From Pelomyxa schiedti (lineage: Eukaryota > Protista > Evosea), in the NCBI GenBank assembly GCA_020536535.1, contig JAHLWZ010000889.1, forward strand, positions 1-58,392: a stretch of DNA of 58,392 bases, read 5' to 3'. Under the pieces are notes generated by a model that worked only from the letters and a program-made list of their open reading frames with translations, had not been told where the DNA came from and did no database searches. Position numbers and translations under genes: made by a program. Every line of letters starts with the position of its first letter. Within the stretch, counting starts at the first letter, position 1. Shown piece after piece: positions 54 through 35,077 of the stretch.

Positions 54-3000
54 GAGGAGGTAATTGTGGAGAGCGGCGAGGGTTTGGCCACAACTGCTGC
101 CCTGGGGGGAGGAGCAATTGCTTGGGGCCGCCCCCCACCGCCGTAGAAAGAACTAGTGGAGACAGGGGTCAGCCCGGAGGCGGTGGCGGAGGAGGAGGAG
201 GAAATGTTGACGGGGGAGGAGGCCGAGTTGCAGGCGGCATCGTGTTGCTGTTGCTGCTGGGGAGGAGGGTTCGGCGCGGCAATCCCCGATGTGGTGAGGG
301 AGGGCGAGGGCGAGAGCGAGGGGGACGGGGACGGGGATGGGGAAGGGGAAGGGGAGGGGCTCCGAGGGTTCTTGGAACCTGGGAAGCTGGAGATGGTGTT
401 TCCGCTGTAGACAATTCTGGAGGAGGGCCGCTCGGCTTGGCTGGTCACAAACCTGATGTTATCGTCTCCCCTTGGGGTTTCGGATGCACTGGTGCCGGTG
501 CTAGTGGTAATTGTCCTTGGAGACTGAATCTGTCTGGGAGAGTTCTGTGTAGTCCCCATGTCGCAATCACTGTTCTTTGCAGACTTGTTTACATTTTTAT
601 CCCACATTCTGCCATCTGCACTGGGTCTCCCATCGTTAGGCCCTGTGGGCTCTTGGTGTCCTTGACCTGAATCTTGCAATGTTCCACTTTGTCCCTCGCT
701 GAGAATGGGTAGTTCACTTGGAAATTGATGTTTTTGAGTGCCCCCATTAGTGCCGGTGCCATTATCATTGCTAGACTTAGCATTCTTGCGGATTCCACTT
801 ACCAGCGGTTTCAACTTCTCATCTTGGTGAGGTATAGAAACTGACTCGACTGTTTTGTCAACATGGGATCCCTTGCCATTGTAATGATTGTTTTTTGAAA
901 GTGTGTCACTTTCATGCCGCTCAATGTTTGGAGTGATGGAATCAACTCTGGCTCCACTTTTGTGAGAACCCTCTTTCCGATCTTTGTGCTCACTATCATT
1001 CAATGTCGGACTATGGTGCCGTTCCCTGGGAGAAGACTTCTTCTCGTCATGTCTAGTTGATCTCGCCTTATGTCCTAACAGAGTTATATATTAATCAACT
1101 ATCCTCAGAGAAGGAATACCGGTTGCTGTTTTGTGAGCCTGATTGGGCTGTGGGGGTGAATGTATGGATTCCTTTTCTTCCCAATTGTCAACGTGTACTG
1201 ATGGTAGTCGGCTGGAACTAACAAATATTATTAATATAGTACTTAACCAAAACATTTAACCTGCTCCTGGTACGCAAAGAGTTGCTGGCATTGTAAGATG
1301 CTCCACCGAATGCGTTTGTCTGTTAATGGGTGAAAGATGTGTGGAATATGAAAGAACATACCTTATCAACTCGTGCCCTCTTAACTTTTGAATCCCCAAT
1401 ATCATTACTGGGAGTTCTCTTACAACCAACATCAGATTTTTCATTTGATGGAAGAGATCCAGACAAAAACAATTCCGTTGCCTCAGTGAGTTTTGGGTCA
1501 CCGGGTTGCCTCTCAAGACAATCTTACAAAATTGATATGTATTGAGAAACATACATCGTTGAATTCAAGTAGTGAGTAATAGTTCAGGTCACTGTCAGTT
1601 TCAAGGTCTGAGCCAACAACCTGTAGCTGTTGTAAGCACACAAATGCCAATAAAAATATACCTGTAAGACTTGATCAATACTCGATATTGGTGTTCGTGG
1701 CGTTGTGAGAGTTGCTGGTTTTCCTGCATTCTTCGTCATATCGGAAAAAATCTTGGTCAAGCTTGGCCCAGACTGGAAGAGGAATCAAAAAAGCTCAAAA
1801 AAGGAGGGAAAAAGTAACATTGGGAAGAGACACTAATGACTGGAGGGGGTGGGAATCTGCATTACTCCACATGATAAATCTCATTACATCTTCCAATTTT
1901 GAAGGTGCGTAACGAGAAAGGGAACATAGTAAAGCTCCACACAACTCTGCTGCTTTTGAAAACCTGAAAAAGTGAACACCAAGAGTCTTGAAACTTTTTG
2001 CACACCCTGGACTGGTGCGAATTTTCAAAAGATTTTCAAGGAAAGTGAAGAAGGGTGACGGTGTTGAAGTGCCCTAAAGAAGTTAAGTCGACTTTTTTTC
2101 GGAGTTTTGGACTACCTCAAATACAATGCAGGAGGCACCATAAGGACGAATGCTCAGAGTAAAAAGAATGTGCAATACCGTGACATATGGCAAACTCGTT
2201 TCACTAGGCACTTCAAGAATATGCTTGAAAAGTGCAGTCACAACCTTACCCATGATAATTAGACACTAGTAAAAAAGAAAACCCCATATACCTTCCCCAA
2301 GTCAGGCGCAGGAGGGTAGGAGGCAACTATTTTGAAATCTTCACTGTGGGTCTCCTCAGCGATACTAACAAAAGGCTAATTCCTCGGTTAGTAAGTGGAT
2401 AAAGAGAACAACACTTACACAACACAGATAATAGACAAGTGCTAGTGCCCAAGAGAGAAGCGTTCCATGAGGTCTTAGACTAAGAAGAGCTGAAATTACC
2501 CCAGCACATCGGGTGTTAAGTAGGAAGGCCTTAAAAAGTTATTAAGCACGGAGCTGGAAAAAGAACAAACTTTGCCCAATGGCCTCTGTGAAACAGCTAC
2601 AAGAATGTCCAATAACTTAACTAATAGACTTTCTTTCTTTAAAGACAAGCTGGCTTCCAATCTGTTCACCACACAGTTCAGCATTGACAGAGTTCCAGGA
2701 AATTTCAGATTTGCGAGCTTGCATAACAAGGTAACAAGGACTTGGTGTGTTATTTTGCAGCTACTACCCGAGAAGTTCATAACACTGGACATCTATTTGA
2801 ATTCAGTACGCCAAAAGTCCAGTTGTCACCTCACCTCATTGACATCGAGATATGAGGTAGTTGTAGGGTTCAAAGATACAATGGAAATAAGCAGAGACAT
2901 TCCAGAATTAAAATTGATTGGAGCCTACCAAGATTAAGACTTATTATCAGTAACAATGCGAAAAACACACCGTAAGGCTGTGTTGCAACAGAGTATTGAG

Positions 3001-6000
3001 TACTTTAATGTTCCCACTGACAATCCAATCAGTTACAAACCGGGCCAGTAATTTCTCCGATCTGCGTAACTCCCAAGTATACTCGGAGAGGGGGAAAGTT
3101 TTTTCGGGTATGAAAGTAGCCCTCAAGAAAAAAGGAGAAGAGACAAGTTCGAAATTCAACTGATAATTTTTTGTTTGTCATGGGAATCTCGAAGTGGGAC
3201 AAACCTTAAGGATGGATTTCATCAAAGGTGTATTACTGTAAAATTGTTTCCAAGTGTTCTTTATCCCCAGAATCAGGGAGGACAGGATACTGAAAATAGG
3301 TACAAGGAGATCAAGATACTTTTTTATGGTATCCCAGGGCTGAAGGAAAAAAATAAATAGTTGCATGCAGACGAAAGGGTTGACCTTGTCTTCAGCATTT
3401 GAAAGCACCTTCGTTGTGTCCTCCAATAATGTCTTAAGTGCAGTCACAAAGGTCGTGTCCAAGATGTGGCTGTATTAAAGATTAAACTTGCAAGAAAAGG
3501 GGAATAGCAGAAACTAGCCTTAAAACCACATATTGCTGATTCGAAGAAAGTAAATGTGAACAAATCCGAAGTGTAGATAAGGTCATAGGAAAGTTGTATT
3601 CCCTTTTCTCATTTCCTGGTTCTAAGCCAGGAAACTTTGGGAACTCTTCAATAAATGTTGGGATCTAACAGTGGTCAGAGGACCTCAATGAATTTTTCTT
3701 ACTCCGTGTTTGAGCTCCGAAAACGGGTGCAGCCAGGACCATGAAAGTTGTGCAAGAGAAAGGGCTTCCTCAAAGCCAAAGCATGATTCAGGTTTACAAA
3801 AATGGGAAATGGCTTGGTAGATGTGATCCCCATAAGAAAGTAGCAGTTTGGTGTTCTGCTCTAACTGTGCAACCTTCATTTCAAATTAGGAAAAGCTGTA
3901 GAATGAGTAGCCGTCACATTGTGCAGAAGATATAAACTGTAATACAAAACAGACAAATTTTGTGGAAAACACTGATCCAGCTGCGAAAGAAGAAACTCCA
4001 CGCCTACGGGACTGTTGGGGACAGGTTTTTTAGTGACAGTTATAGGAAAAAGGAAGACCTTGAGAATGTTGACACAATAGCGTATTTACCAATTGGGTTC
4101 CTCATCATCATTTGAACTTCAGTAAGCAATCCAAATTTATCTTCTGTGGAATTCATCACTTATTGTTGAGAGGCTATTTTAGAGGTACCTTCTGATAACA
4201 CCCGCTCAAATAAGAGAAATGCATGGAGGTGATAAGATAAAAAATGAGACAGCATAACACAAGAACACTGCTGCGATTCGAGCATAACAGGAAGTGTGAC
4301 AAAGCATGTCATTGGCTCGTAGTGTGGGTCTAAAACCTTGGGACTGTTTAGAAGATTGAAATTTCTTAAAAAGGCTACCTGGATTATGGAATTAACGACT
4401 GTTGTATTAGAAAGGAGATACAACTGTCCAGATTGACTGCTTAGAAGATGAAGGAAGAATTTCTTTGGAATTTCAGAAAAAAAGAAAGTTGTGGGGTTTG
4501 GTAACCGTTAATATGCTAAGAAGTTTTGAAAACGCAGTATGCTGCCGTAATGCAGGATGGCTCAGTAGTAGTAAAATTGATGTGAGAAGTTCTTCTGGAA
4601 GTGGGGGTGGTGGTGGAAAAAGCTCAAATGCATTTAACGGGGAACTACATGAACTTAGTGATCAGAGGAAAAGCTATCTTACTTTTCATATGTATTTGAA
4701 GAGAATCCAGCTGATGGGTCCATGAAGCTGAGGAAAATGTCCTGGCAATGTTACTGAGGTAATCAGAAGGGCAGAGGATAGAACCACTGTAGTATCGATA
4801 ACTTGACCACATAAATCGCCAGATACTTGTTCCTTAGATTCCAATGCCTTCAATGCCTCCTGTGAGGACATGAGACAGGTTACAAAGCTAAATGGTAACA
4901 ACTGGCAATTCCGAAATTTTATCAAAGAGTTGTGTGTTGTGAAGTAAACGCTTCGCAAGATGCAAAACAGCAGTTGAATGAGGCCGAGATAAGATGAGGT
5001 TCAAGACAATTTGGTACCCAGTCTATGGTCCAAAATCAATCAAGTGAAAAAGTACAACTGACCTACTGCTCCGCTCTTGTCTCCCTGAAGGAAATGCATC
5101 ATCCCACTTGAAAAAAATGTTATCGTGGACAGAGTGTTTAGAATGTTCAATGCAAGCCATGAGGTAGCAAAACCAAGGCTGAGAAGAGAATATAAACGAG
5201 GCAGAACTCCTGCTGACTTTTCCCAAATCAAATAAATAAACTGTAATGAAAAGTTGTAGAGTTACCAAAAGGTGTGCACACAGAGTTCTAGAGAAGGGTG
5301 TCACTGTGTTAATAAAAGTAATGGCTGCATCTATAGAAGGAAGTCCTCGTTCCATGTGGAGCATTTCAACTGTCAGAGTTGCAATGGAAGACGCATCCGT
5401 TTCACTGATGATTCCAGAGCACATATGGCAGGTCTATCACAAATTAATCCTGAAAGATGGAAGCTCAAACATTAACTATTTTTGATGCATTCTCAGAGAA
5501 GTGTAAGAATGCATTCCTTACAGCACATGCATCCTTTGAAATAAAAGTTATTAATATTAAAGGGAAACGAGGCCAACATTAATCTCTAATGTGGAAATAT
5601 TTTTCAATGCAGCTGCCATAGCAATGTGTGACGTGATACCACAGCGACCATAAGAAGAAGACTTGACAAGCACTTCACGAGGCTCGGGCCATGAAGTCCA
5701 ATCCATACTAGAGGCTGGTAGTTGAGTTTGAAATACCGAAAACAGATACCTTAAATTGGAAGTCGGTGGCGACTCTGGTGGTACAGAGCATCCATAAATG
5801 CAAATGGATAAGACAGAAAAATTTCCATGAAAAACAAGGAGGTCAGTAACTTGCTGAGACAGGTATTACGATAGAGAAAAAAATGCCAGCCCAAACCGTG
5901 ATTTGTGATGGCAAATATTCCACATTATCCTGTGCTTCATGTACAAGAGCAAAGCATAAACTCCCTTCTTCTTGGACTTGACAAAAAAATTTGAGTGGTC

Positions 6001-24780: not shown

Positions 24781-25572
24781 TCACCACCTGCCCACACCAC
24801 ATACTTGGCTGTAGGGATGCGTTTCGTACCAGTCCTCACACCCCCAGGAATCATAGTCCAAATGGGCCTCAGATAAAGCAATAGTATACTTAATTACATG
24901 TCCCCCCGTTGTAGAGGCAAAAATGTCGTAGGTCCAGCCCCAGGCAGTTGAGAAAGTGATGTGTTGAATGATGAAGGAGTCGTCAAATGGGCCACGAAAG
25001 AGTAAGCTGAGACCCCTCAGAATATGTGAACGAGAACCGGCTTCTCGACGGCAGAACTTGTCCACAGTGTCTGTTGCCACTACTGGAGGTACAGTTGCGG
25101 GAGGTCTCATGCATAAATGGAGCAGACAGCCACTAGCACGAGTCAGTTCATTAGAAAAAAGCAAAGAAGATGTAACAATAATCTGAAAGTGCACATTAAA
25201 CCATGAAATAACTCGGCACCTTGTACCAACAAAAGAATGAACTCAAGGTGGAACAGAAAACAGTACAAGTCTTCCACTTTTACGACAACAACAAGGCCGC
25301 TTTAGATTAACAGAAATATGACAGCGCCGAAACCTCCTAGCACCCTTGAAGACCTCGGCACAACGGAATCCCACGTAACAGCCGTCCTTAGATTGACCAA
25401 TTGACCTCCACCACTGGTCGAATTGACCCTGGCCCAGCCGGAAATGGTCCCTCCACGTACGATTCACCCCCCGGCACCGCCATGCATTAACTAGGGGAAG
25501 CCGCGCCATTACCATCTGCACAATTGTGGGATCCCCCTGCATCGTAGCCACGGTCTCAACAAAGTCTTTCAC
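24781..25572 (-). CDS. F-box-like protein (two or more exons)
   Basis: DPTIVQMVMARLPLVNAWRCRGVNRTWRD fits the F-box consensus; the C-terminal region is unrecognised. First in-frame ATG is at 25542. Confidence 0.5.
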
Positions 25573-25625: not shown

Positions 25626-28600
25626 TCACGGGGATTTGTGGCTGGTTTTTGTTACAGCACGGAGTTGGTAAGGCCCTTGTGAGAGTATAGTGCGATCGTG
25701 GGGATTGTTCCAATCAAAGAGAATAGTGGATGCAACAGGGGGTGGGTAATTGACTTCCACCACCCACAATCTGTGTTGGGTTAATAAGAGTGTTTGGAGC
25801 GCGGGTCTATTTGGTGTTTTCAGGTGAAAAGGAGACATACAGGCTCAGGTTTGGTGACAGGACGAGATCAAGGGTGTAGTCGGAACAGTTAATTTTTGGT
25901 GCCACAGATTCCCACGCAGTAAAAATTGCTTTCTCTATATCTCCATGCCGTTTTATCTGAGTGAGTTCAGTTGATTTTGAAATCGCGCGGTTATAGAAAG
26001 TGATTACAATTTCGGGCACAAAGCAATGTTTATGATACATAGATGCTGCATTCAAGTTTCCCCTTGCTACAAACAACTTGTTTGAAGTTAGAACCTCCAT
26101 GTGTAATAGGGTGCCTTACTCTAAATTCCCATTCAGTGTCAAAAACCTCGAATTTTCTTATAGCCACGTAAACAGGAAATGTACCGAGCATCTCACAAGT
26201 TCTCAAGTCATGCATAACACGCTGGCTGTGAAGAAGCAGCCGAATTGCATCCATAGCGTGTGTTACACACATTGACATCACATGAGCCCTAGCTTCACAC
26301 ACCCCTTGGTCAAGTGATGGATTCTGATGTTTCACTTGTTGTAGAATTGAATGATAGTGGCTGGTGGCGAAAGCTGAGTCTTTTGGGCTACGAGTAGAGA
26401 GACGTACAAATGCACCCTTTTTTTGAACTTGGATTAAGTTTGGGGAGGATGAAGTGCAAACTAACCTGAGGGAAACTTTCAATGAGTATTTTCAGCTGGG
26501 ATTCAAGGTCGGTTATGGCTTTCCAATTTGCTCTGTTAGTTTCCTTCCATGAAATCACAATTTTTCTATAGCTGTCATCTTTGGCTTCAATGAAATCCTC
26601 TTCGTTTTGTGCATCAAGTTTAAAATCAAGGGATACAGCGCCTGTGTAAGAGCTAAGACTATCAGTATAGAGTTAGAGGTGTATGGACCTGATTTTGATA
26701 CACCCGTTTCAGTCACCTTCATGATATACTCCGTGGGTTTGTCTCTCTCCCGGGAAAAAGCCTAGATAATCATAAGGCCAATAAATGCACACAGGAGAAA
26801 ACCTCACGAGATTCTGTGGACAATAGCATTGAATGGCTCAGTGACCTTAAAACGCGTGCATCAGTTTCTGACAGAAGTATGAACTCCGTAGGAAATGTGA
26901 CCTGTTTCAAGTCGTTGTACCATCGTTCAATCCGATAGTACATATCAGAGGGTGATGCTTCTGGCATTAGCTCCACTGTTGGTATTGATGGGCTTGGAGG
27001 CTCGGGAAGAAGCCCAGACTTTACCATGAAATCCAGTTGACGAGAAAAGACTTCAAATGTCATAGCAGGGCAAGTAATTCCACACTGTCGCATCATCTTG
27101 CGAGTATTTGACGTGTCAGGACCAAGGTCAAATTCAACGCCTGCAAAACCACCACCAAGTAGCAAGCTCTGCCTGAAGACAGCAAGAGGATTTGTGTCAG
27201 GCATTTCAGATAAACATGCAAACCACTCTTCTTCGCACATCTCACGCAGTTTGTAGCCATAACGGTGAAGGTGTGTCAGCAAAGCCTCCCAAGACAGTGG
27301 TGTAGGTGTTACTAAGTGTAATACCTCGGGGTTCACCTCGATATTTTGGGGCAGGGCCCCGGCGGTAAAACCCTTTTGTACAGCCATTGCTGTGCATATT
27401 ACAGAGCAAACATAATCCACCGGAGTTAGCAAAAAGTTGGGGGGTATGATCCCTGTTTTGGCTGGATAACCGCCCAAATATATTAGTCCACGAATCACAG
27501 CAGTGGTGAAGCATGTTGGGTTACAGCATCCACTTTCAGAGTGAGCAGAGATCGTAGATGGGCGATAAACCACAACACGAGGCAGAGAAAGAGAATGCCC
27601 TGCAGACACTGAAAGAACTTCAGAAACAAATTTGGTGGCAGCGTACCCAGGTGCATTGCTGAGTTCAGAGAGGGTGTATAAATCCAAATGTAATGGGGTC
27701 TCAGGGTGATCTTCTGCACCCTTACCGCGTAAAACGTTCACACTTGATATGTGGTGGAGGTGTTTCTTCACTGGACCAGAGGCAGCAAACTTGATAACTT
27801 CGAGGGTGCCTCCAACGTTGATTCGTTTGAGTGCCGAGTAGGGAAGAACCCCATTAACTCGTGCAGCGTTATGAACAACGTCTGCCACCTCATGAGCAAG
27901 CCTGTGGTAGGTATGTAAACTCAAACCCATGAGTGGAGATGAAACATCGCCACACAGAACAAGCACACGGGATATATCTGCTGGTAAGCAATTCAATGTC
28001 TTGGCTGCATTCAAATATCGTTCTTGGGCATGCATGTCACTATCACCCCTCACAATACAATAAACTTTTCTGCCAGGGAAAGCTTCAACTAAGTATTTGA
28101 CAAGAAAGGGTCCAAGAAAGCCTGTGGCGCCGGTGACAAGAATATCTTCACTCGCGGGCACTGAGAGAGTTTGCGTGCATCCTACCTTTTGACACACATC
28201 GGCACATTCTCTCAAAGTCTTTTTTCCATAAGTTTGTGTTACAAGAGAAGAAGAAGCTGAAGAAGAAGGCAACCTGTCTTGTAAAATTCGTGGGAAGGGT
28301 GCACTCAAGCTGCCAGTTAATTTGCGGTTTTCCCACTGATGCAGAGTGGGTTTTCTCTTTTTGGCATGCAACTAACCCTTCAAATTCCAGTAGGCTATTT
28401 GCTTGCATCAAGTCTACCACGTTGCACATTATTCCAGTTGATTCAGCAAGAGCTCTTATAACACGAACTGCGGCCAGTGAATCCAATCCAAGATGTTGAA
28501 AAGAAACGGAGGGCATGTCACAAAGAGCTGTTCCACAACCGGCTGTTACAGTGCTAAGAGCTTCTCCAAGTTGGGGTACTCTTACAAAAGGATTGCGTTT

Positions 28601-31600
28601 TCCAGAAGCAGTAACAGTTTCCTGACAAGGAGCAAATAAATCAAGTATTTCCTTCTCATATCTCCTACTAAGAGCACATCGAGACTTCTTGCCAACAGCC
28701 GTCAGCAGCCCATTCTCCTGAGAGAACGGAACAGTCTCGAGTAATATGTGTTGTGGTATTTCCCAGGGCTTGAGTCGATTTTCAGTTGCAAGATTGAGTA
28801 TTTCAGTTCTGATGGCACTCCTGGATGTGGAAGGATTTTTTGGAACAATAACACCAACGACTGATGGAGTGAAAGCAGATCCATATACATAAGCTTGCAG
28901 AATTTCAGGTGACTTCTCAAAAGTGTTCTCAAGCACTTCCAAGCAGACAAATTCACCTTGTGAAAGCTGGGGAAAAATTTTAGCATGGCAACAGGTTGAA
29001 ACGGATACCTTGACAACAGAACCAATTCGTGCCTTAATTACGATTTTGCCACCACACCGGGCTCCAATGTCCCCTGTGCGGAAGTATCGTTTTCCATTGA
29101 TTGTGAGAAACTGTGATGCATTTAAGGGGGCATTGTCAAAATATTCAGAATTGCTCTCGACGCAAATTTCACCACTAGTGTCATTGGGACCTTCACCTTG
29201 TAATCTCAATAAGGAGATTGGGTCAAGGTCGGGCAGTGGATGAAGTACTACATCAACAGAAGAGGACACAGTCCCATTTACAGCAATCGTGCCTGTTTCA
29301 GTAGTTGAATAGCCATCACCTACTTGTCTCTGATATCAAAGGTGAAAATAAAACAAAGTGTGGTAAAGAAAGAAACATTGAAGCATCGTGTCAAAAAGTT
29401 ATACAACTGTTCAGATGTTGCTGCCCCTCCTGTTATCACCCACTGTACTCTATTTCCTAGCATAAGTCTAGCGTGACTTAATGCGCGATATTCCTCGGAT
29501 ATAGTTGGCTTATTACTTTGAAGGAACTCCTTACAACCCGAAAAGAAGGAAGGGATACAGTAAGTGATGGAGTGGCAAGAGAATGCTAGAGCGTAAACCT
29601 GATATTCCGACATTAATAAAGACCAAAAAGAAGGTGGTGCACCAATCAATGTTGGACGAATGGACTTGATATTCTTAAACAGATGGGACTTGTCTCCAAA
29701 ATGAATTCCTACCTACCATCTCAGTGAATTTCCGGAGTAATGGTGTAGTATTTACCTGTCCGCCATTGCAGAAAACTCTCCAGGTTAATCGTCGGGAAAA
29801 GGCATGGAAGGGGGGCTAAGAAGAGTTATTGAAACACTCCCCATTTTGGAGGTGGGTGCAGTGAGATACTTGAAAATCAATAGTAACAATAGGCGTGACA
29901 GACCCAAGGGATTCATGTGCAATTTTGAAGTGGTTTCTATCTGTCCAAACTACCCCCTTCGGTTCCCCTGGGGTTTTCAGGGAAAAAATTGAGTACCAAG
30001 GAGGTTACCTGAACTTCCACTTGTAAAAACAATGGATATTGCGTCTTTTGGAAGGTTCAGCTGTACTGTATCTCTACTCACAATTGGAGCAAAAAAGTTG
30101 CTTTTGGATGACTCCAGTACGGTAAATAGATAAACAGAGGTAGCTCCCCATCCTTTACAGTTCAAAGTGCATTCCCCTTTCACAGAGGTCTTACCCCACA
30201 CAATAATACTGCGAAGAGTTTTGATAGATTTCTTAAGAGGGATTAGAGGAAAGTATATGGAGTCAGATTAGTACAAGCATTTCCATATTCTGGTTGAAGA
30301 ACTCGTCGTCACAAGCCATAACTGAAGCTTGTGCCGAATGCAATATTCTACTGGACACTTCTGGGTTCGCGTGTGGGTCAATTGGAACCGACACAATCGA
30401 GGCACAGAGAAGAGCATAGTCGCATATTATCCAGCACAGATGATTATCACCACATATGGCGACGGTGCTTCCTGGAGTTGCACGATGGAGTTGAGAAAGA
30501 TTATCACTCAATCTCTGATATAGATTAAGTGGAAATAGGACTGGACAAGAGAACCTCAACACGTTTGTTGATTTCTCCATAGGAAAGCCACATATAATCA
30601 TCCCCACCAGGGGAGGGAATACCAAGGAAAGGTCTCGCAGAATACTCCTGCTTGATATTAGCACAAGGAGAAAGTGATAAAATACATGAAACGCTGAGAA
30701 TAGTAGCTCTTTGCAAGTGTAGCCATAAAGGTAGTTGATGCTTTTGTGATCTGGTATATACACCCTTAAGAAGGTGTGTTTGGGAAAGGAGTGAAGGAAA
30801 GGTGAAACAAGCACACCTCTGAAAATGGTGTCCCTCTTTATGTACTGTACTAGCTTGGGGGAAACATTTTATACATAAATTCGAGACGTCGTGCTCACAT
30901 GAGGCACAGTTGTAACGATACTGCGCTGCCCAAGAATTAGGACTGTAGAATAAGTAGGAGATGAACTTGGAACGATGAGTTTTCCGCAACACAAGCATTG
31001 ATACTTTTTTGCATGCCCAGACGTGAGTTGGTCTGCATCACCCAGAGCATTGGCGAGAAGATTATTACATATGTGACATAAAGAACAAGCCGCAGTATTG
31101 TACCCTGTAATGTGTGCAACATAGCCATAAACAAGACCCCGCATAAGTCTCAAAAAGAACAACTGTAATAGTGGCAGTTGATCCCACAGTTGAAAACTAA
31201 CTTAAACCTCTGAGTGATTCGAGGCAAACCATGTAGCTTGAATTCCGCAAGCCGTCATCCACCCTATCCAACTAAGCCCCAAACCAAACAAAGATACAGA
31301 AATAATAAGTGTAGAAGGTCATGAAAAGAGTGGGCTCTCACCGGCCAAGCCTTGGCATCAAGAGAGCTCTGTAGAACCACTCCTCAGTCACAGGTAAAAG
31401 TACTACATAATCCAAATTGTTGAATGCTCCCACAACTGCCCTCTCACATCCCACCAGGCACCTTTCTGTGAAACGCCTTGCCGGCCAGTTTTGGGTCTTC
31501 CCTCCGGCATCCCACAAGTGCCTTGCCATGACCCTCCAGCGGCGTAACGTGGAGGTCAAACCCCTGCGCCACATTGTTACACACCAAGTGACACCCAGAT

Positions 31601-31982
31601 TTGCGGCCACGCCCAGTCCCACAATGGACAACGTCCTGAGGCTCCCAACACCCCACAGCCCCGCATAAAACAGTGGCGTTCCGGGATTCCCCCCCGAGCC
31701 GCTTTCGGCCCCCAGCACCCAGAGGCACACAGCCAAAATGGTGGCACCCATAATCCAGTACACCACCGCCCGGCCTGCACGCAACAAAACCGATCCAAAA
31801 ACTCCTGCGGCATCATTTAGTCTGGCTGGGAGCGGACCAGCCCGGCTATGACTCGTGCGAGCGCCGGCCGATCCAAAAACTCCATGCAACCGCGAGTCTA
31901 GCATGACCCATAATAGAACGTCAGATACGCTGGCGCACAAGACCTCGACGCATACAGCACAAGCAACAACCGCCCAACCCAT
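25626..31982 (-). CDS. Multidomain fusion: CPBP/Abi intramembrane protease + ZZ zinc finger + CAR-like adenylation-thiolation-reductase + CDC123/R2K ATP-grasp
   Basis: CPBP motifs EEWFYR, FASNH and HICNN. ZZ: CLCC..YRYNCASC..LCIKCF..H...HHF. A domain: FTSGSSG, GYSTTE, YFRTGDIG, LSQGEFV, ENGLLTAVGK. T domain: LGLDSL. R domain: VTGATGFLG, HNAARVN..LPY, GYAATK. R2K: YYRIERWY..TFPTEF, AFVRLSTRSPKD, EWEFR, YTLD, VVEVN. The domain junctions I checked stay in frame through short GT-AG introns or within single ORFs. Confidence 0.75.
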
Positions 31983-33884: not shown

Positions 33885-35077
33885 ATGTGTTGTGTGGTGT
33901 TGTGTGTTTGTTTTTTTATTTTTGCGGGGGTCAGTTGGTGTGGTGGGGAAGTTTTGGTGAGTGGGGGTGTTGGTAAGCCTTGGATAATTTTTGACTCTGA
34001 TATTGGGCCTGATGTGGATGATACTGGGGCACTTGCCGTTCTCAATGTGGGGCCTCCATTCCTACAATAAACATAATATTGTGGTGAGGGTAACACCCAT
34101 TAATCAATACACACCTACAAATAAATAAATAATTTGTTTGACACAAAGGCTGGAGTGATAAATGACTTAGTGGGAATTCTTGGAGTTGCATGCTGCACTT
34201 CTGATATATATGGCGCCCCCGCTCTGGATTCAATAAATACTTACTACGGCTGTGGTTCCTTATCTTCCACGCCTGTCGTTGGTACAAACAAAGAGAGTAT
34301 AAATTTCTTGTCTGGGCCTGACTATGAAGTGTACAACAAAGACCTCGCCCTTGAATTTCCAAACAAACTGGATGGTGATGGAGGCAACGCACAAGAGGTG
34401 GTTGCGATGTACCGGTATATTCCAACTCCACTCCTTGCAGCTTAACACCTTGACATGACAAAGTCTGTTATAGGTCACTGCTCGCCAACCTCAGTTCAAG
34501 TGATTCGGTTATTTTTGTGGCTGTTGGTCCCCTCGTCAATATCGCCGCCCTTCTAAACTCGCCCGCCGACTCTATATCCCAAAAAACCGGCCTGGAGCTT
34601 ATAGCAGAGCACTCAGAGCTTCTCGTCTGCATGGGAGGGGCCTATCCCAGCGGCACTGAATGGAATTTCCTCATGGACCCCGCGGCCGCACAACTGGTTG
34701 CCACCACTTGGCCCACTTCAATAGTCTGGAGTGGCTTTGAAGTTGGTTCCACAATCATGACTGGAAATGTACTCAACCTCCAAGCACCAAAAACAGACCC
34801 CGTTCGCACAGCCTACAACCTCTACGTGGGACCAGGAAACAACCGTGAGAGCTGGGACTTGACTGCGGCCTACTATTCTGTGTGGAACACATCCACAGCT
34901 TTGTTCAAGCTCAGCACTGAGGGCTACAATGTTGTCGATTCAGATACTGGGAGCAACCAGTGGGTGGAAGAACCTGGGGCTAACCAGTGGTACTTAATAA
35001 AGGCTGCAACAGACGAGGAGATAGAAGCAGAATTAAATTCACTTCTACTCCTTACTCCCCTTTGTGTGGGAAAATGA
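33885..35077 (+). CDS. Inosine-uridine nucleoside hydrolase family protein with a predicted signal peptide
   Basis: IIFDSDIGPDVDDTGALAVL (Ca-binding aspartate motif), VAVGPLVNIA, MGGAYPSGTEWNF and SWDLTA; hydrophobic N-terminus; two introns. Confidence 0.85.

Follow-up and report, generated by a model that had tools for sequence, protein, structure and literature searches.

A single spliced gene of Pelomyxa schiedti joins, in one chain, a CPBP domain, a ZZ zinc finger, a carboxylic acid reductase (CAR)-like module of adenylation (A), carrier (T) and thioester reductase (R) domains, and a CDC123/R2K ATP-grasp domain. It lies on the minus strand of the window, by which we mean the whole stretch of 58,392 nucleotides that was analysed. 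The fusion is kin of the NRPS-like A-T-R enzymes, and comparison with its relatives indicates that it is a conserved family and not a one-off: the domains keep their order and their motifs and are inherited together. We tentatively propose, with a probability of about 0.4, that the protein is a membrane-anchored, condensation-less and self-contained line for making a small molecule, in which an acid would be reduced, a bond made by ATP-grasp ligation and the product released by a hydrolase. Every domain is known singly, and the combination is new as far as the full-text literature searched goes (subscription journals lay mostly outside its scope); a text search of the supplement of the R2K paper (PMC4431377) also gave no R2K-CAR fusion. 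The preliminary description of this DNA had called the architecture undescribed, and the literature covered agrees with it. The gene and its parts are the following.

25626..31982, minus strand: whole fusion gene, 21-22 exons, about 1,776-1,791 aa, in the order CPBP-ZZ-A-T-R-R2K.
31342..31982, minus strand: exon 1, with CPBP motif 1 (EExxxR, 31385-31368) and three segments predicted to be hydrophobic; the N-terminus is like that of the homologue P0040.
31061..31271, minus strand: exons 2-3, with CPBP motif 2 (FxxxH, 31228-31214) and motif 4 (HxxxN, 31075-31061); Pfam PF02517 at E 5e-13 in a homologue.
30817..30997, minus strand: ZZ zinc finger, split by the intron 30966-30926; Pfam PF00569, E 8.5e-4.
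28640..30647 (ends approximate), minus strand: CAR-type A domain, with P-loop 30024-30010, A5 29317-29297, A7 29083-29069 and the A10 lysine 28699-28685.
28376..28513, minus strand: carrier (T) domain, with the phosphopantetheine Ser motif at 28492-28478; Pfam PF00550, E 1e-7.
27020..28143 (ends approximate), minus strand: thioester reductase, with the NADPH motif 28134-28111, YxxxK 27648-27631 and, at 27567-27553, a Ser where CARs have Asp; PF07993, E 3e-50.
25626..26934, minus strand: CDC123/R2K.1 ATP-grasp domain, beginning in the exon of R, with the basic motif 26410-26378, ExR 26134-26120, Asp 25878-25864 and ExN 25760-25737.
25957..26007, minus strand: in-frame intron of 51 nt, seen as a joint in an RNA contig, additional to the introns of the preliminary description and to the 20-exon model.

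The 20-exon model runs on the minus strand from the ATG at 31982 to the stop at 25628-25626 and has no internal stops, split codons included; the three unspliced frames of the same region have 106, 63 and 63. Its 19 introns measure 38-70 nt and have GT-AG borders throughout, and those proposed earlier (31341-31272, 31207-31163, 30966-30926 and 28273-28219) have these borders at exactly these positions. Several exons straddle domains. Exon 3 carries both CPBP motif 4 and the first cysteine pair of the ZZ finger, exon 14 joins A to T, and exon 15 takes R on into the start of R2K; the first and last of these bear out earlier claims that the exon with HICNN continues into the ZZ finger and that R and the beginning of the ATP-grasp domain lie in one exon. 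A further in-frame intron of 45 nt inside exon 1 (31447-31403) is probable, because the transcript of a decayed copy described below uses an acceptor at 31403, and its removal brings the spacing upstream of motif 1 nearer to that of the homologues. With these corrections to the introns, the second of them probable, the protein has 1,791 or 1,776 aa.

We searched with the exons of the window individually, with the database protein P0001 and with full-length homologues. The R2K exon retrieved the gene's own record, KAH3745028.1 of Pelomyxa schiedti, which is titled 'carboxylic acid reductase' and agrees with our spliced model from the A domain nearly to the end. We reject both of its ends. At the 5' end, the record removes CPBP motifs 1-4 by splicing, and with them the ZZ finger, so that the architecture is invisible in the database; at the 3' end, it joins the downstream F-box gene and is contradicted by an RNA contig that reads through the stop. 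Residues 196-1612 of P0001 agree with the exons and with the RNA. More generally, databases conceal the family through gene calls that break its members up or splice them wrongly, and word-index searches yielded few relatives. The F-box gene is a separate minus-strand gene just downstream (window 25246-25572, continuing to about 24781; Pfam E 0.003).

Support from reads is strongest at the 3' end. In a single-cell RNA run, an 816-nt contig spans 26636-25620, is identical to the window and verifies the introns 26465-26417, 26119-26077, 26007-25957 and 25840-25771, as well as the stop. The Pelomyxa RNA depth is limited to this interval; 26640-29150 and this copy's CPBP-ZZ-A junctions have no RNA coverage. 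Another, small RNA contig verifies the intron 31341-31272, yet it bears letters of a second gene copy:

G000:C1252, about 2880-5150 (L046): decayed duplicate of the fusion gene, about 98% identical in the aligned blocks.

Frameshifts are numerous in this duplicate, deletions have each removed 116-944 nt and the R2K part is missing, and it keeps the CPBP-ZZ-A-R order. It may still be transcribed, judging by the spliced RNA contig that carries some of its letters. At the DNA level, one contig covers the whole stretch and may be the source of the assembly itself; two further DNA runs of the same sample bridge the R-R2K and T-R junctions with zero differences. These runs, the uninterrupted reading frame of a relative and the intron positions common to relatives are our grounds for rejecting an assembly chimera, a possibility that the preliminary description had raised for the junctions.

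The full CPBP-ZZ-A-T-R-R2K order was found in seven sequences, Pelomyxa included, and five further members are partial; identities within the family are 30-40%. Besides Pelomyxa, the members are the following.

P0040/P0003: full order in an uninterrupted ORF of 1,789 aa (5.4 kb), on contigs of 5.6-6.0 kb from several runs.
Cymbomonas tetramitiformis KAK3277905.1: full order.
L051, L052, L140 and L142: full order, split at introns by gene callers; eukaryotic neighbours for L051, L052 and L140.
Pyxidicula operculata, Arcella intermedia, Polykrikos kofoidii and two metagenomic contigs: partial members that begin inside A, T or R.

The transcriptomes of the partial members may contain prey contamination. 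The named hosts are all phagocytic feeders, a regularity to which five names give little weight. In the tree of R domains, the fused reductases form one clade, separate from eleven Pelomyxa paralogues (98/99). The R2K tree, a quick one of 68 rows, also places the fused domains in a single clade (SH-aLRT 98), together with one fragment of unknown context. The sister pairs are the same in both trees: Pelomyxa and L140, Cymbomonas and Polykrikos, L051 and L052. L140 has introns at four or more of the positions seen in Pelomyxa, and in the same phases, and one of these also occurs in Cymbomonas. The common positions are independent support for the splice model and indicate that the gene was inherited in spliced form among eukaryotes. 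Pattern-limited scans that covered viral contigs and prokaryotic genomes gave no fused copy; what they returned were R2K proteins standing alone, one of them viral and three from genome records (two of these Asgard archaea), and on this ground we set aside a viral or bacterial origin of the fusion. For the conflict or effector role suggested earlier, what speaks in favour comes down to a patchy distribution; the lack of fused copies in these pattern-limited scans does not support it.

The domain identities given in the preliminary description (CPBP, ZZ, A-T-R and CDC123/R2K) were upheld by motifs, profiles and homologues. Its proposed domain check succeeded in part: Pfam run exon by exon returned a weak Rce1-like match, ZZ, AMP-binding, PP-binding and NAD_binding_4, and missed the R2K exons when these were taken singly. 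The CPBP match is weak in Pelomyxa, where PF02517 reaches only E 0.13 and 0.19 on the split exons, compared with 5e-13 to 4e-9 in homologues. Motifs 1, 2 and 4, which make up the catalytic set EExxxR/FxxxH/HxxxN of Rce1 and DidK (PMC10811503), are intact in the complete members; in L142 an intron splits motif 1. A low-confidence model of a homologue's N-terminal part (mean pLDDT 59) had as its top two matches, among 48,161 chains, SpdC (Z 12.4) and Rce1 (Z 9.2), the two solved CPBP proteins, with scores that helical bundles can reach by chance. Foldseek with the N-terminal model returned A domains only, and neither SpdC nor Rce1 was in its list. The fusion shares the three motifs with Rce1, SpdC, DidK and myxosortase and differs from them in being joined to large soluble enzymes and in having fewer predicted membrane helices (3-5). 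Protease or esterase activity of this domain is predicted. The ZZ finger retains its Cys/His zinc-ligand pattern across the family, and in the homologue model it superposes on the ZZ of p62 (Z 7.4, rmsd 2.0, 51 residues). We do not class it as a p62-type, N-degron-binding ZZ, since the acidic residues that p62 needs to bind N-termini are not conserved: when the groove residues D129, D147 and D149 were sought by eye in the family, the D129 site had Leu, Asn or Ser and the D149 site Asn. A second ZZ-R2K pairing occurs in P0023, in which an R2K domain is followed by a C-terminal ZZ finger.

The A-T-R module carries, in this order, A3, A5, A7, A10, the carrier Ser, TGxxGxxG and YxxxK; the carrier motif deviates in two members (NS and CS). 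Its A domain is closest to an actinobacterial CAR (E 2e-51), and its reductase to MxaA-R both in sequence (E 1e-38) and in fold (TM 0.81 by target). It shares with type I CAR (NF041592; PDB 5MSO, 5MSC and 5MSP) the A-T-R order and a CAR-type A domain with the histidine motif, and differs by an R nearer to MxaA, by Ser or Ala at the linker-loop Asp position in all fusion members and by three additional domains. Scores for NF041592 (342 and 354 bits, with a cut-off of 1300), together with the missing Asp switch and the affinity of R to MxaA, led us to reject a type I bacterial CAR. MxaA-R (myxalamid) and the thioreductase of an S. coelicolor PKS are the best matches of R in sequence and fold, but the fusion lacks condensation or ketosynthase modules, and its R is not terminal, being followed by the ATP-grasp domain. 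Domain scans found no condensation domain in the Pelomyxa exons or in the homologues, and the amino-acid adenylation profile TIGR01733 scored 86 bits (cut-off 317); on both grounds an amino-acid NRPS module is rejected.

These results bear on what the module may produce. ATP- and NADPH-dependent reduction of an acid is predicted from its motifs. In bacterial CARs this Asp is linked with a reduction that stops strictly after two electrons, the product cannot be predicted from its absence, and NRPS reductases of either product kind lack it (PMC8024701); the Ser or Ala of the fusion therefore does not fix the level of reduction, aldehyde or alcohol. The assignment of 'acid to aldehyde' made earlier is accordingly not established, for a reductase that has Ser or Ala in place of the two-electron Asp and is nearest to MxaA-R. 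A lipopeptide aldehyde made by NRPS logic, also suggested earlier, is unlikely with no condensation domain and with an A domain of CAR or acyl type; if a peptide bond is made, its source would have to be R2K, a predicted ligase. The Pelomyxa genome has two loci of the phosphopantetheinyl transferase (PPTase) family and a dozen or more further A-T-R genes, with no CPBP or R2K partners in the flanks seen. Two adjoining matches to the PPTase family lie at G000:C561 21307-25231. Just 3' of one A-T-R paralogue, on the same strand, there is a protein-kinase-like frame (L008:2-535, G000:C852) that may be a C-terminal fusion.

The ATP-grasp domain has the signature of the R2K.1 clade: two basic residues (in strand 2 and the loop of the RAGNYA unit), ExR, Asp and D/ExN. 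It matches human and S. pombe Cdc123 in sequence (E 8e-20), and its model (pLDDT 86) matches Cdc123 4ZGP (E 1e-11, TM 0.71 by target). A classical CDC123 orthologue, the eIF2 chaperone, was rejected because a much better D123 match lies on another contig, C104 (141 bits), and the fusion domain falls in a separate clade. The fast-evolving amoeba-type CDC123/R2K.1 proteins (PMC4431377) have the same two basic residues, ExR, Asp and ExN. The fusion domains differ from them in forming their own clade, in a two-strand insert after the first helix and an NYPPP-type end motif, both of them features of the family, and in being joined to a CAR module. The joint model of R and R2K, with a pTM of 0.60, does not establish that their active sites are in fixed contact. 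The R2K clade was predicted in 2015 to consist of protein-modifying peptide ligases (PMC4431377), and CDC123 has been shown to act as an ATPase chaperone only (PMC12860950); the literature covered held no demonstrated ligase activity for any R2K enzyme. Peptide ligase activity of the fusion R2K is thus a prediction. The Pelomyxa genome has about 25-30 D123-like loci. In one, GGACT follows straight after the D123-like domain (L026:605-1468, G000:C796; Pfam E 1e-11; the R2K tree has L027 as its near paralogue), and in another Pth2 does so (L034:2117-2839, G000:C833; Pfam E 1e-28). We also found two stand-alone amoeba-type R2K proteins in Asgard records (L135 and L136; Helarchaeota and Thorarchaeota), 30-34% identical to the family, which bear on the origin of CDC123.

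In the small-molecule line that we favour, A would adenylate a carboxylate other than an amino acid and load it on the phosphopantetheinylated T, and R with NAD(P)H would turn the T-bound acyl group into an aldehyde or alcohol, both steps being established chemistry for such domains. In place of a condensation domain, R2K might then activate a second carboxylate as acyl-phosphate and join it to an amine or to the R-derived alcohol. The CPBP domain would anchor the enzyme in the membrane and, by ester or amide hydrolysis, could mature or release a lipophilic product in the manner of DidK, and the ZZ finger may be a binding or regulatory module of a wider ZZ-A-T-R family. We favour this line because the family is retained with the same R and R2K clades and with the motifs of three catalytic units kept, A is nearest to CAR and R to MxaA, there are two PPTase loci, and there are bacterial precedents. 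DidK is a CPBP esterase that matures the NRPS product didemnin at export (PMC10811503), a similar pairing of CPBP hydrolase and thiotemplate enzyme (DidA). Livipeptin is made by a condensation-less NRPS working with a separate ligase, and fusions occur as well (PMC10548850); the logic of an A-T-R enzyme with a non-NRPS ligase is alike, although that ligase uses tRNA and belongs to another family. Neither system unites all three activities in one chain, unlike the fusion. Against the small-molecule line we count the lack of a gene cluster for the fusion, the pTM of the R-R2K model, the status of R2K ligation as a prediction and the NS and CS carrier variants, as well as the consideration that a fusion of domains shows linked function and not a linear pathway.

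Other readings give the same domains different tasks. The protein may be a membrane-tethered acyl reductase that makes fatty or aromatic aldehydes or alcohols, for lipid metabolism or detoxification, with CPBP as a regulatory protease and R2K as an ATPase chaperone or switch. This would accord with the CARs among the top Atlas and NCBIfam matches, with the A-T-R paralogues without CPBP or R2K in the flanks seen, and with the chaperone activity of CDC123 (PMC12860950). We hold it to be a serious if unlikely alternative, since every complete member, in distant lineages, keeps both extra domains and their catalytic residues, which suggests coupled chemistry. Doubtful as well, although it is the main rival, is a cleave-and-tag reading that takes up a proposal of the preliminary description: CPBP would cut a protein near the membrane, the carboxylate at its new C-terminus would be activated by R2K, and the product of A-T-R, alcohol or aldehyde, would be attached there, giving a new C-terminal lipidation. 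The complete Rce1 catalytic set is retained, R2K domains are predicted protein modifiers (PMC4431377), in myxosortase cleavage by a CPBP enzyme goes with anchoring at the surface (PMC11980579), and other R2K proteins of Pelomyxa have as neighbours or fusion partners the GGACT and Pth2 domains, whose targets are amide or ester links; weighing against it are a ZZ finger without the acidic residues with which p62 binds N-termini and the predicted status of R2K ligation.

It is very unlikely that Pelomyxa makes no single protein and that the domains come from separate transcripts, such as one for R2K alone that begins at an internal start, or from a chimera. A Met does stand upstream of the R2K start within exon 15, and RNA depth is restricted to 26636-25620. 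However, single-cell RNA is usually 3'-biased, inter-domain stops are absent, the relative's uninterrupted ORF recurs on several contigs, intron positions are common with a relative and the decayed copy has the same domain order. The earlier reading of the gene as one protein is therefore upheld, with the same chain in relatives and with Pelomyxa RNA covering the 3' introns only.

The fusion sets a candidate source of substrate beside an R2K ATP-grasp, and this makes the ligase question posed in 2015 testable through one gene. It also suggests that distant protists (archamoebae, testate amoebae, a green alga and a dinoflagellate data set) have in common an undescribed metabolite or modification of proteins. 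Should cleavage followed by tagging, improbable as we consider it, turn out to be true, it would be a protein modification of a new kind, and its ligase step the first to be demonstrated in the CDC123/R2K clade. Elsewhere in the window, spliced frames on the plus strand (34042-35077) have, by eye, the look of a nucleoside hydrolase.
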